From NCBI RefSeq assembly GCF_001194135.2, contig NC_069006.1, positions 4,565,436-4,629,435 on the forward strand: a stretch of DNA of 64,000 nucleotides, written 5' to 3'. Made by a program: the position numbers and the translations under genes. Below, in pieces: positions 23,901 through 26,635 of this stretch (positions within the stretch are counted from its first letter, which is position 1; each line of letters begins with the position of its first letter). The notes under the pieces are model-generated. The model had not been told where the DNA came from, ran no database searches, and worked only from the letters and a program-made list of their open reading frames with translations. Source of the stretch: Octopus bimaculoides (Eukaryota).

Positions 23901-26635
23901 NNNNNNNNNNNNNNNNNNNNNNNNNNNNNNNNNNNNNNNNNNNNNNNNNNNNNNNNNNNNNNNNNNNNNNNNNNNNNNNNNNNNNNNNNNNNNNNNNNNN
24001 NNNNNNNNNNNNNNNNNNNNNNNNNNNNNNNNNNNNNNNNNNNNNNNNNNNNNNNNNNNNNNNNNNNNNNNNNNNNNNNNNNNNNNNNNNNNNNNNNNNN
24101 NNNNNNNNNNNNNNNNNNNNNNNNNNNNNNNNNNNNNNNNNNNNNNNNNNNNNNNNNNNNNNNNNNNNNNNNNNNNNNNNNNNNNNNNNCCATACCTTCG
24201 TTTTATTTGCTTTTTTCATTTTAAATTTGCTTTAACCCTAACCCTAGGGTTAGGGTTAATTGTTTCAGAATCGTTTGTTTATGTAGTCGGCACTTAATGT
24301 ATATCGGCTGAATGGACGTCAGTGATTGGTTGAAATTACAGAAATACGACAACTTTAACATGGAATAACTTATGGATTTCTTTTTTTTTTTTAAGAAGAC
24401 TAAGAGAAAAAGATGTTTTATATGACACATTCTACCAGTGTTCCAAGTTTCAAAGTGTTTCGTTAATGAAAAATGTGGCCCCCGTTTTAAAAAAGATCCC
24501 CACAATGTACTGAGTATGTGATAGGTGAACCACAATATGGCAAGGGTTTGCTGTATGTGCACAAATGCAAGTTTCCTGGTAATACAAATAAGGAAACTTA
24601 TATAAGTATTAATATTGTCATTCTCATCTTCACACATAACCCACCCAATATTAAGGACCACCAATGAAAGATTAGTACCTTTGAGCTACTAGAATGATGA
24701 CCCCCACCGCCTCAAATATCAAGGGTGTTTGGTGTGGCAGCAGCATTAGCATAAGGTGTGATGTAGAAGCAGGAGGGATTGCATGCTGAGAAATCTCTGA
24801 GAATTGACCTCAGAGAGAGAGAGATGGTATACCGTATTTTAATGTGTATAAGGAACCTTAATTTTGGGGGCTTAAAATTTGGGTAAAAGGTTTTTTAAGG
24901 GATTATAATACTATCCATGTATAAGAAACTCCCATATTTTTTTAATCTGATTTTTGACAAAAATGGGTTCCTTATATGTTAGAATATAGTAAATGTTGTC
25001 AATGCAGGTCCTGACCAAATAAATTAAGGCAAAAGATGTTTTGGGAACAGGCATTAAATATGATATAGGAATAATCCTTTCTGCTATAGGCAGAAGGCCT
25101 GAAAATTTGTGGGAGAAGACTAGTTGATTACACCAACCCCAGTGCTCAGCTGGTACCTAGTTTATTGATCCTCAGAGGATAAAAGGCAATGTCAACCTTG
25201 GTGGGATTTGAACTCAGACCATAAAGATGGCCAAAATGCTGCCAAGCTCTTTGTCCAGTGTGCTAATGATTCTTATTTCTTTATTGCCCACAAGGGGCTA
25301 AACATAGAGGGGACAAACAAGGACAGACAAAGGTATTATGTCAATTATATCGACCGCAGTGCATAACTGGTACTTAATTTATCGACCCTGAAAGGATGAA
25401 AGGCAAAGTAGACCTCTGCAGAATTTGAACTCAGAACGTAGCGGCAGACGAAATACCGCTAAGCATTTCGCCCAGCGTGCTAACGATTCTGCCAGCTCAC
25501 GGCCTTGTCCTAGAATGATAATGATTCTGCCAGCTCAGCTCTTTAATAATAATGATGATCCTTTTTACTATATGCATAAATTTTGGGAGAAGGAGTAAGT
25601 CGATTACATCCACCCCAGTACGCAACTGGTACTGATTTTATTGACTCCCGAAAGGATGAAAGGCAAAGTTGACCTCAGCGGAATTCAAACTCAGAATGTA
25701 AAAGCTGACAAAATGCTTAGCGTCATTTTGTCCAGCATGAAGATGATTCTGCTAGATCTCCACCTTAGGACATTGAAATTATAATTGAATCATGGCACTC
25801 CGTCGGTTATGACGATGAGGGTTCCAGTTGATCCGATCAACGGAACAGCCTGCTCGTGAAATTAACATGCAAGTGGCTGAGCACTCCACAGATACGTGTA
25901 CCCTTAACATAGTTCTTGGGGAGATTCAGCATGACACAGAGTGTAACAAGGCTGGCCCTTTGAAATACAGAAACAGGAAGAAAGAGTGAGGAAAAGTTGT
26001 GGTGAAAGAGTACAGCAGGGTTCGCCACCACCCCTTGCTGGAGCCTCATGAAGCTTTAGGTGTTTTCACTCAATAAACACTGACAATGCCTGGTCTGGGA
26101 ATCGAAACTGCGATCCTACGACTGCAAGTCTGCTGCCCTAACCACTGGGCCATTGCGCCTCCACAATAATTGAATAATGACACTGACTAATTACAATGAT
26201 GATGATAGCAGAAGTAGCCATGTTTTTTTTTTAAAGTTTTTTTTTTGTTTTCTTTTCACTATTTTTTTCTTGCTTGTCTTTCCAGATATCATGCCGGTCA
26301 GTGCTCTGACTGACCGAGGTCTAACAGAAGCCCTCGACTGGCTGGCGTGCCATCTTGGTTCCGTCCAGGCTAAGAAAGCTGTCTACTCCACTGTGCCACC
26401 AGCACCTGAAGAAATGCCACGGATGCAACGAGAGTCTGGTGACCGACTCGAACATAGCATGGACTACTGTTCAAGAGCCTACACTGCCATTAAGTGCCTC
26501 TTCTTCAGAACAAGCCGCACTCAGGATGTCACCGACAGTTGCCCAACAACAACAACAACTCACCTACAGGACTCACTACAAGACTCGCGGACAACAACAG
26601 CACCGGGCAAATTTCAGAACTGCCCGGAGAAATAG
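11830..26635 (+). CDS. ADP-ribosylation factor (ARF/ARL family) small GTPase gene, multi-exon, with long C-terminal extension; 5' exon(s) and one internal exon not visible
   Basis: Three spliced exons read by hand: [27 protein letters not shown] (P-loop, switch I), [20 protein letters not shown]...[11 protein letters not shown] (G4 NKxD) and [19 protein letters not shown] (G5). All have canonical AG/GT boundaries, and the last two are phase-compatible (TGG A|AT ATC). Orthologue not assignable by eye. Confidence 0.93.
12130..12460 (-). mobile_element. CR1/Jockey-like LINE ORF2, post-RT fragment (degenerate)
   Basis: Minus-strand remnants IAKT..KYFGPQQL..EYCSHI, collinear with the RT fragment at 13870-14750. 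Confidence 0.6.
12895..13105 (+). mobile_element. SINE family A; further copies at 13525-13740, 16655-16873(-), 19892-20328 (2), 22790-23005, 34247-34450, 34866-35085, 38810-39260 (2)
   Basis: Same consensus as 5843-6290, with (ATT)n tails. Confidence 0.85.
13148..13475 (-). mobile_element. R4/Dong-clade LINE 3' end
   Basis: [33 protein letters not shown] / [33 protein letters not shown] (one frameshift). (ATT)n on both flanks. Confidence 0.85.
13870..14750 (-). mobile_element. CR1/Jockey-like LINE reverse-transcriptase fragment (pseudogenised)
   Basis: [53 protein letters not shown] and YTDDTT motifs on the minus strand, with stops and frameshifts. Confidence 0.85.
14936..15895. repeat. 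119-bp tandem array (at least 6 visible units plus a gap) derived from the interior of MITE family F
   Basis: Unit starts ctttgag at 15040, 15159, 15533, 15652, 15771. Unit sequence equals the MITE F core. Confidence 0.92.
17205..17600 (+). mobile_element. SINE family B full copy; others at 29580-30010, 54120-54660, 60070-60750(-), 59405-59545, 45970-46070, 52900-53040(-), 23420-23610
   Basis: caggagtggctgtgtggtaag...ggttcagtcccactg head, (TA/TG)n spacer, conserved tail ending gaaacaagtaaaaga. Confidence 0.85.
17620..18115. repeat. Tandem ~140-bp units of piggyBac-like MITE family G; also 9400-9660, 12665-12895(-), 28292-28900, 43103-43490
   Basis: aaaccttccatcaaaatttc...ttttactaaattcttcattattttc...atggtaacaaaagggttaa repeated head to tail. 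Confidence 0.8.
21030..21335 (+). mobile_element. SINE family E with (GAT)n tail; copies at 44130-44425, 37480-37755, 46560-46840, 52545-52870, 32690-33000, 59630-59740
   Basis: Duplicated gttgccagtaccgc..gactggc module, ttaggaagggcatccagctgtagaaac, ccaacccatgctagcatggaaagcggacgttaaacgatgatg. Confidence 0.85.
21661..21898 (+). CDS. ARF-like GTPase exon (switch II to G4): [79 protein letters not shown]
   Basis: Acceptor caatacag|CGA, donor TGGA|gtaagt, 238 nt, phase 0-1. ARF motifs FVxDS, DRER and ANKQDL. Confidence 0.95.
21905..22760. repeat. Compound (TG)n/(TGTA)n low-complexity tract immediately after the ARF exon donor
   Basis: Direct reading. Confidence 0.9.
23842..24499. mobile_element. 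Merlin-like non-autonomous TIR element (copy 1), nested in a pogo/Tigger-like MITE (23650-24556)
   Basis: Ends GGATCTATTTT / AAAAAGATCC. Exact 8-bp TSD CCACAATG at 23834-23841 and 24500-24507. Confidence 0.75.
25066..25760 (-). mobile_element. Three tandem SINE family A copies
   Basis: Reverse complement of the family A consensus three times. Confidence 0.85.
25793..26164 (-). mobile_element. tRNA-derived SINE family C, full length; copies at 36110-36492(-), 49807-50125(-), 56656-56988(+), 62365-62545(-), 63320-63700(+)
   Basis: A box tggcccagtgg, B box ggtttcgattcc, conserved body, 3' end gaaccctcgtcgtcgtaaccgacggagtgcca. Confidence 0.9.
26286..26635 (+). CDS. ARF-like GTPase terminal exon: (N)[23 protein letters not shown] plus 92-aa tail, stop TAG
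   Basis: Long pyrimidine tract ending tttccag|AT, G5 (SAL) and LDWL motif, open to TAG at 26633-26635, followed by (AAT)n. Confidence 0.92.

Follow-up and report, generated by a model that had tools for sequence, protein, structure and literature searches.

Can a small GTPase of the ARF family carry its membrane anchor at the opposite end of the protein? The question is raised by a stretch of 64,000 nucleotides of the Octopus bimaculoides genome (NCBI RefSeq assembly GCF_001194135.2, contig NC_069006.1, positions 4,565,436 to 4,629,435 of the forward strand; hereafter the window, in whose own numbering coordinates are given), where the open frame of an ARF-family gene runs on well past the end of its G domain. 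An initial annotation, made from the letters of the DNA, had read the resulting C-terminal tail as an ARF-type N-terminal anchor moved to the C-terminus. On detailed examination, the ARF-family gene and its long, conserved coding tail with a cysteine-bearing helical segment were upheld, while the relocation of the anchor was not. By comparison with its orthologues, the gene is the octopus member of the Arl20 family, whose function is unstudied, and its tail an extra module beside a normal N-terminal anchor rather than a substitute for it.

Coding status of the C-terminal tail

The segment 26286-26635 (+) is the last coding exon of the gene. The end of the G domain, comprising the G5 SA motif and helix alpha-6, occupies 26286-26356 (+) and aligns to the C-terminus of ARF1. 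The tail follows at 26357-26632 (+), and the frame stays open for exactly 92 codons beyond LDWLACHL, as had been annotated, up to a TAG stop at 26633-26635 (+) whose position is the same in Octopus vulgaris and in cuttlefish (...PEK*). The chance of 92 stop-free codons is 0.0016 at the base composition of the window and 0.026 at that of the tail, and the GC fraction is 0.52 in the tail vs 0.23 downstream of it.

Comparison of the tail with that of O. vulgaris revealed 12 synonymous changes, one non-synonymous change and one in-frame codon indel in an (ACA) run, giving a ratio of non-synonymous to synonymous substitution rates (dN/dS) of about 0.02. Against a cuttlefish-like genomic contig (L001), for which the synonymous rate is saturated, the ratio is ~0.11 and the stop position is again the same. 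Both values indicate purifying selection. For the G domain, the comparison with O. vulgaris gave 9 synonymous and 4 non-synonymous changes. The tail also has in-frame orthologues in cephalopods, gastropods, bivalves and a chiton, so that the conservation of the frame on which the initial annotation depended is found well beyond the octopuses. Because of the 12:1 substitution pattern and these in-frame orthologues, the ARF frame is taken to be the coding one, and the tail to be, as judged from these comparisons, a real conserved coding sequence. A second open frame overlaps the tail (26355-26762 (+), 135 codons) and extends into an (AAT)n microsatellite as poly-Asn; this overlap is probably due to chance.

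Of 1.84 billion representative proteins, only 22 were hit in an exhaustive HMMER search with a profile of the last exon. Those sequences that were inspected were without exception C-terminal ends of ARF-family members, and every named one was from a mollusc; the same search detected no similar motif outside ARF C-termini. The tail alone matched no Pfam family, and the solved structures recognised by a sequence search of the PDB cover the G domain only, none of them reaching the tail.

Identity of the gene

Arl20 owes its name to Vargova et al. 2021 (Genome Biol Evol 13:evab157; PMC8358228), who established it on the basis of phylogeny and of intron positions; their text describes it as recognisable by three unique intron positions along with one that is common to Arf1 and Arf4. 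It is an ARF-like GTPase that derives from ARF1, occurs in invertebrates and unicellular holozoans, and has been lost from vertebrates.

The top hits of the octopus gene are annotated as "ADP-ribosylation factor 1-like" or "3-like" and come from Octopus, cuttlefish, many gastropods, bivalves and a chiton. The O. vulgaris protein (P0004, 264 residues) is 97% identical over all window exons and matches the Pfam family Arf (PF00025) over residues 6-171 with 196.8 bits, vs a cut-off of 22.3 (E-value 2.6e-58). The hit from Lottia (P0046) is identical to the sequence listed as LgiArl20a (Lottia gigantea XP_009058762.1) in the supplement of PMC8358228. In a neighbour-joining tree of the G domain (156 columns, with the tail excluded), the octopus protein and LgiArl20a were grouped with 91% bootstrap support.

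Intron positions provide a further clue. Those of the octopus gene, which fall between ILL and G, PTI and G, DKx and R, and xW and N, are identical in a gastropod genomic contig (L002, in which introns 2-4 were read at the splice sites and exon 1 was located separately) and in the Arl20 of Solemya. The latter belongs to a second set, referred to here as b-type Arl20, which comprises LgiArl20b, CteArl20 (Capitella), BflArl20a (amphioxus) and the proteins of Ptychodera (a hemichordate), Oscarella (a sponge) and Solemya. The Arf1 gene of the bivalve Mactra, in contrast, has introns between PTIG and F, NTQ and G, and NKQ and D; compared with it, the window gene shows three positions that are absent from Arf1 and one that is shared. 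The agreement with Arl20 is with the count pattern given in the text of Vargova et al., the sameness of the three positions being unconfirmed from its figure. Taken together, sequence comparisons identify the gene as the O. bimaculoides orthologue of Arl20, of the 'Arl20a' type represented by LgiArl20a. By its switch II, as known from orthologues, its protein end and its intron positions, it does not qualify as a canonical Arf (Arf1/Arf4/Arf6).

A literature search found Arl20 mentioned in no paper other than Vargova et al. 2021, and in the passages of that paper considered here neither the tail nor the change in switch II is discussed. The novelty is nevertheless modest, as the family was already named in 2021 and the gene is already annotated, badly, in RefSeq; the new points are a mollusc-wide tail motif, a C-terminal extension as a family-wide trait and the missing catalytic Gln. 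Arl20 is among the few ARF-family lineages without functional data, having been overlooked because vertebrates and the standard invertebrate models lack it.

Anatomy of the tail

The alignments comprised 32 full-length proteins, including seven b-type Arl20, and 13 mollusc motif segments. Directly beyond alpha-6 lies a proximal segment, GSVQAKKAV (26357-26383 (+)), modelled by AlphaFold as a short helix at residues 176-184, and its pattern LGS-x-QA-(K/R)-K-A is conserved in Arl20 generally. It is followed by a low-complexity linker of highly variable length, ranging from ~20 residues in scallop to ~550 residues in Biomphalaria and Bradybaena. Beyond the linker lies the conserved motif DYC...FFR (26462-26509 (+)), a predicted basic hydrophobic helix of 16 residues with two cysteines and the consensus D-Y-C-x-R-A-Y-(S/T)-A-(I/F)-(K/R)-C-(L/F)-F-x-(R/K). 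In the 13 mollusc sequences the C, R, A, K and F are invariant, and both tyrosines and the second C are nearly so. The pattern DYC-x-RAY-x-A-I-K-C-L-F is kept in cephalopods, gastropods, bivalves and a chiton, and the motif shows zero non-synonymous changes relative to O. vulgaris.

After the motif, the distal end is short and acidic or polar. Cephalopods differ from LgiArl20a in adding ~40 polar residues here, which end in G(K/R)FQxxPEK. The Thr/Ser/Asp-rich stretch that had been attributed in part to (ACA)n belongs to this cephalopod-specific end and does contain such a run, (ACA)4-ACT, read as TTTTT, at 26546-26560 (+); the corresponding run of O. vulgaris is one codon shorter, and a Ser stands in its place.

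Two variations on this plan were observed. In oysters (Crassostrea/Magallana; P0077, P0138 and P0175) the Arl20a motif reads EQCTRAFSSLKWLF, with Trp at the position of the second Cys, and switch II is DIGCREK; the substitution bears on whether both cysteines can be acylation sites. In heterobranch snails (P0139, the 774-residue protein of Biomphalaria pfeifferi, and the Bradybaena-like P0140 and P0169) the linker of ~550 residues is Ser-rich and holds about ten RK-x-S-x-x-SL-x-D-x-P repeats that resemble kinase sites. The C-terminus of these proteins still carries AYCSRAYSA(F/I)KCLFFRP, and the Biomphalaria protein ends with the motif.

Switch II and comparison with other ARF-family proteins

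In the orthologues the P-loop, switch I and the NKxD motif are intact. Switch II, however, reads DIG(S/A/C)(R/K)DK in octopus, cuttlefish and other molluscs vs DVGGQDK in ARF1, so that it lacks the catalytic Gln71 as well as the second Gly; for O. bimaculoides this segment is taken from orthologues, which are 97% identical in the comparable exons. The Q71L mutant of ARF1 is an established precedent for impaired GTP hydrolysis, and by analogy with it Arl20a, lacking the catalytic Gln, probably hydrolyses GTP poorly.

LgiArl20a resembles the octopus protein in its orthologous G domain, its N-terminus MGQxWT(K/R), its switch II DIGSRDK and the plan of its tail, with the motif DYCSRAYSA(I/L)KCLF. 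The b-type proteins share the four intron positions (as seen in Solemya), an Arg in place of the catalytic Gln, and an extension which opens with L(G/A)S-x-x-A-K-K and has at its end a correspondingly placed aromatic helix. They differ in that their switch II, WDVGGRDK, keeps the second Gly, their tail is shorter and their distal helix contains no Cys, resembling that of Arl20a in pattern only. When whole tails of Arl20a and b-type proteins were compared, the profile-profile probability was 94.6% (E-value 6.7e-8). Since whole tails match in this manner, the C-terminal extension can be regarded, at the level of sequence profiles, as a trait of the Arl20 family. The distal helices alone matched with a probability of 4% (P 0.009, same register), and the hhalign match of the tails was lost once the proximal segment was removed, suggesting that this segment probably supplies most of it. 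As the match of the helices alone is not significant, their homology is not claimed and is to be treated as unproven.

ARF1 proteins provide the nearest solved structures (E-value ~2e-61, residues 4-174) and have in common with the octopus gene and its orthologues the Gly2 helix, P-loop, switch I and NKxD. Unlike these, ARF1 stops a few residues beyond alpha-6, has DVGGQ with Gln71 and differs at three intron sites. C-terminal modules are not without parallel among ARF relatives. ARL4 has a basic C-terminus, and ARL13B has a coiled coil with a Pro-rich tail. For ARL13 and for the eustigmatophyte ARF members with a CaaX box, such modules are described in PMC8358228, and the CaaX proteins offer a precedent for a lipid anchor at this end. 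None of these shows similarity to the octopus tail in sequence, and the octopus protein ends in PEK, with no CaaX box, coiled coil or Pfam domain in its tail. The additions to the definition of the family would be a constrained C-terminal module, in molluscs a Cys-bearing helix on a variable leash, and the missing catalytic Gln.

Possible roles of the tail helix

What could such a helix do? AlphaFold predicts, for O. vulgaris, a helix at residues 206-223 that covers the motif, with a predicted local distance difference test score (pLDDT) of about 50. In this model and in that of a gastropod orthologue with a shorter tail, the G domain mostly scores >85, the linker <50 and the motif helix about 50. 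In neither of the two models, as judged without predicted aligned errors (PAE) or coordinates, was the tail helix docked with confidence on the G domain, and no coiled coil is predicted in the tail. The helix carries a net charge of +3 to +4 with a mean hydrophobicity of ~0.5. Its hydrophobic face spans ~160 degrees (Y, A, A, L, I, C, F, Y), and the face opposite bears Arg, Lys, Arg and the second Cys.

From these features we propose a protein of ~265 residues in which a Gly2 amphipathic N-terminal helix and an ARF G domain would be followed by the short helical extension LGSVQAKKA, a disordered linker, the nearly invariant helix and the polar end of cephalopods. The tail helix, held on a tether, would make a second contact that complements the N-terminal myristoyl switch. 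It would fold on contact and would most likely insert into, or lie on, the membrane, where S-acylation of one of its cysteines, a possible and so far putative modification, might stabilise the contact. As a GTPase without its catalytic Gln probably hydrolyses GTP poorly, the tail could contribute avidity or regulation beyond that provided by the nucleotide cycle. Arl20a identity together with a tail helix acting as a tethered second membrane contact is, in our view, the best joint explanation of the data; its mechanistic part is inferred, and we hold the chances of the whole being right to be about even.

Several observations weigh against this explanation. The hydrophobic moment of the motif helix is 0.32-0.35, vs 0.63 for residues 2-13 of ARF1. 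The initial annotation had likened the segment to the ARF amphipathic helix; a Cys-bearing helix is indeed predicted, but its amphipathicity is only moderate, the moment being about half that of the ARF1 helix. A HeliQuest-style lipid-binding discriminant gave 1.63, a value equalled by an 18-mer taken as a control from within the G domain. The near-invariance of residues extends to both faces of the helix, which is more in keeping with a specific protein interface than with a generic membrane helix. The two cysteines lie on opposite faces (20 and 200 degrees), the second is replaced by Trp in oysters, and in PMC8358228 the first motif Cys of LgiArl20a (C220) has 0 predictor votes and the second (C229) 2 votes, palmitoylation being given as 'not present'. 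As for the identity, the clade of octopus and LgiArl20a adjoins LgiArl20b, CteArl20 and BflArl20a in the tree, but the deeper nodes have bootstrap values of 1-19%. Moreover, exons 1 and 3 are not visible in the window, and the N-terminus and switch II of O. bimaculoides are those expected from orthologues. The membrane-binding role of the helix is accordingly put forward as a proposal. A zinc site formed by the two motif cysteines was also considered and rejected, as these share a single helix, with a spacing of nine residues, and face opposite ways.

The near-invariance that the helix shows on every face in different mollusc classes, together with its only moderate amphipathicity, would be well accommodated if the protein were Arl20a but its tail helix bound a protein instead, whether an effector, a regulator, a calmodulin-like partner or, in an autoregulatory manner, its own G domain, with the linker as a leash. 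Basic and aromatic helices commonly act as partner-binding peptides, and the RK-x-S-x-x-SL repeats that fill the heterobranch linker resemble regulatory phosphosites. However, no partner is known, no similar motif occurs outside ARF C-termini in the search described above, and AlphaFold places the helix on the G domain with confidence in neither orthologue, which is weak evidence given a pLDDT of about 50 and a reading made without PAE or coordinates. We consider protein binding the main alternative and a distinct possibility, though not one that we would favour.

A bolder reading is that Arl20a, with the Gly-to-Ser and Gln-to-Arg changes in its switch II, is impaired in hydrolysis and dual-anchored, its stay on membranes or its engagement of a partner being governed by the tethered Cys-bearing helix (e.g. 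through reversible S-acylation) together with the myristoyl helix, and that the tail is ancestral to Arl20. We think this unlikely. If true, it would provide a member of the ARF family that switches in part independently of its nucleotide cycle, as well as an undescribed ancestral tail of Arl20. The present comparison in any case opens the way to studying the attachment and regulation of an atypical ARF-like GTPase.

Exon structure and the assembly gap

The exons were located by tblastn searches that used ARF1 and the O. vulgaris orthologue as queries. Exon 2 (11830-11907 (+)) encodes the P-loop and the start of switch I, has phase-1 introns on both sides, is bordered by an AG acceptor and a GTAAGT donor, and is 100% identical in protein to residues 20-46 of O. 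vulgaris. Exon 4 (21661-21898 (+)), with a CAG acceptor and a GTAAGT donor, runs from RPLFRHYY to LKHVW plus the first base of an Asn codon and holds the NKQD motif. The A with which it ends (21898) and the AT which opens the last exon form this Asn codon across the junction. The last intron has its polypyrimidine tract and its AG acceptor at 26222-26285 (+), and the junction of KH(N/V)W with NIMPV is found in spliced cuttlefish mRNAs as well as in the O. vulgaris model. The splice sites of all visible exons are intact. The window itself is AT-rich, gap-ridden eukaryotic DNA with 18 N gaps amounting to 5,308 bases in all, and the O. vulgaris gene (locus L009) covers 52 kb.

Exon 3 is expected from orthologues to be of 74 nt and to encode the interswitch and switch II (GFNVETI.YRDIS.TAWDIGSRDK.). 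It was not found in the assembled bases of the window by tblastn, regular-expression (regex) or blastn-short searches. Window positions 18281-18310 correspond to 51013-51042 of the O. vulgaris locus, an intron segment ending 33 nt before exon 3, and abut an assembly gap of 555 N (18311-18865 (+)). Since the counterpart of the O. vulgaris segment before exon 3 continues directly into the Ns, exon 3 is most likely concealed within this gap, being expected ~33 nt into it. A gap-free deletion of the exon at ~21332, between a (GAT)n and an (AC)n tract, was considered and ruled out by a 27-nt match leading into the gap. Positions 18866-21332 represent additional intron sequence with a copy of an element resembling a short interspersed element (SINE) at its end; this copy closes, on the 3' side, a stretch of ~2.5 kb by which intron 3 is extended in O. 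bimaculoides, whereas in O. vulgaris a SINE-like copy lies just upstream of exon 3, a site at which O. bimaculoides has none.

The RefSeq models of the O. bimaculoides gene (P0006 and P0125) are 100% identical to the window exons, and the tail is retained in both XP_014771265.1 and XP_014771265.2. The former has, in place of exon 3, a short segment without a match in any orthologue, and the latter begins within intron 3. Both models are faulty because exon 3 falls in an assembly gap and exon 1 lies tens of kb away, and their correction is of practical use. With exon 3 missing from the assembled bases, both models broken in these ways and a frame shift to be expected if the 74-nt exon is skipped, the O. 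bimaculoides copy might be suspected of being a decaying pseudogene, or the tail of being a read-through or annotation artefact. This we judge to be highly improbable, as the O. vulgaris sequence preceding exon 3 leads straight into the gap, the visible exons and their splice sites are intact, and synonymous changes outnumber non-synonymous ones 9:4 in the G domain and 12:1 in the tail.

Exon 1 and the N-terminal anchor

The orthologues start with MGQLWTKIFRHKDVR, and the pattern MG(Q/H/N)xW(T)K/R is present at the start in O. vulgaris, O. sinensis, cuttlefish mRNAs and other molluscs. By pattern, this N-terminus would be a helix of the myristoylation type with Gly2 and Thr6. MGQLWTK fits a Gly2 context compatible with N-myristoyltransferase (NMT), AlphaFold gives a helix at residues 2-8, and LgiArl20a is tabulated as myristoylated with 2 predictor votes in PMC8358228.

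In O. vulgaris exon 1 is MGQLWTKIFRHKDVRIILL and is situated 43.8 kb upstream of exon 2. Collinear matches place the start of the window near position 33,900 of the O. vulgaris locus, ~31 kb downstream of exon 1. The initial annotation had reported no ATG-GGN start exon upstream, and this holds for the window: neither exon 1 nor any ATG-GGN exon was detected by tblastn, regex or blastn-short in the 11.8 kb that precede exon 2. The absence is accounted for by the 43.8-kb intron 1 of O. vulgaris, which puts exon 1 outside the window. In the gastropod contig (L002) all five exons are found, with the MG exon ~4 kb upstream of exon 2. Additionally, the MG start and the tail occur together on uninterrupted ORFs of 259 residues in cuttlefish contigs of ~1 kb from five sequencing runs (L004-L008); as the gene is interrupted by at least four introns in genomic DNA, these contigs must represent spliced mRNAs.

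An inverted ARF, with no N-terminal myristoylated helix and with a relocated, acylated amphipathic helix at the C-terminus as its sole anchor, would draw on the lack of an ATG-GGN exon in those 11.8 kb and on the hydrophobic Cys-bearing helix of the tail, but it is scarcely credible and, as far as these sequences tell, already refuted in the relatives of O. bimaculoides, where every full-length orthologue combines the tail with an MG start and N-terminal helix, the spliced cuttlefish mRNAs contain the very MG-start exon that the proposal would do without, and exon 1 is found upstream of exon 2, beyond the reach of the window in O. vulgaris and ~4 kb away in the gastropod. The tail of Arl20a is thus best described as an extra module added to a protein whose normal N-terminal anchor is predicted to be in place, and the rule of N-terminal ARF anchoring is not overturned.

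Repeats and other observations

The 3' untranslated region begins with the (AAT)n microsatellite (26647-26754 (+)). Long (AC)n, (ACAT)n and (TG)n-type tracts are present at 1-760, 16215-16780, 21330-21570, 21900-22660, 27470-27780 and 31450-32270, and such microsatellite tracts account for most of the long mechanical ORFs of the window.

The SINE-like element, of ~290 bp and ending in (GAT)n-GAC, was recognised at 21032-21332, 44144-44424, 46624-46843 and 37571-37753 of the window and at 50721-51011 of the O. vulgaris locus. Another repeat is located at 25800-26165, upstream of the last exon, with similar sequence near 49582-50040 and 56879-56990; it occurs on both strands, and its translation contains NIPENYVKGT(H/R)(V/I). 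The copy at 26040-26165 has the look of a tRNA-derived sequence, but nothing is reported there by ARAGORN or Rfam, and the tRNA and Rfam scans of the window likewise gave no hits.

In the Arf1 locus of Mactra antiquata (L011), exons 2 and 3 occur twice (about 3363-7214 and 18299-20126) with 90-97% protein identity, which points to a partial duplication in tandem or to a second copy of Arf1 fused into a single gene model.

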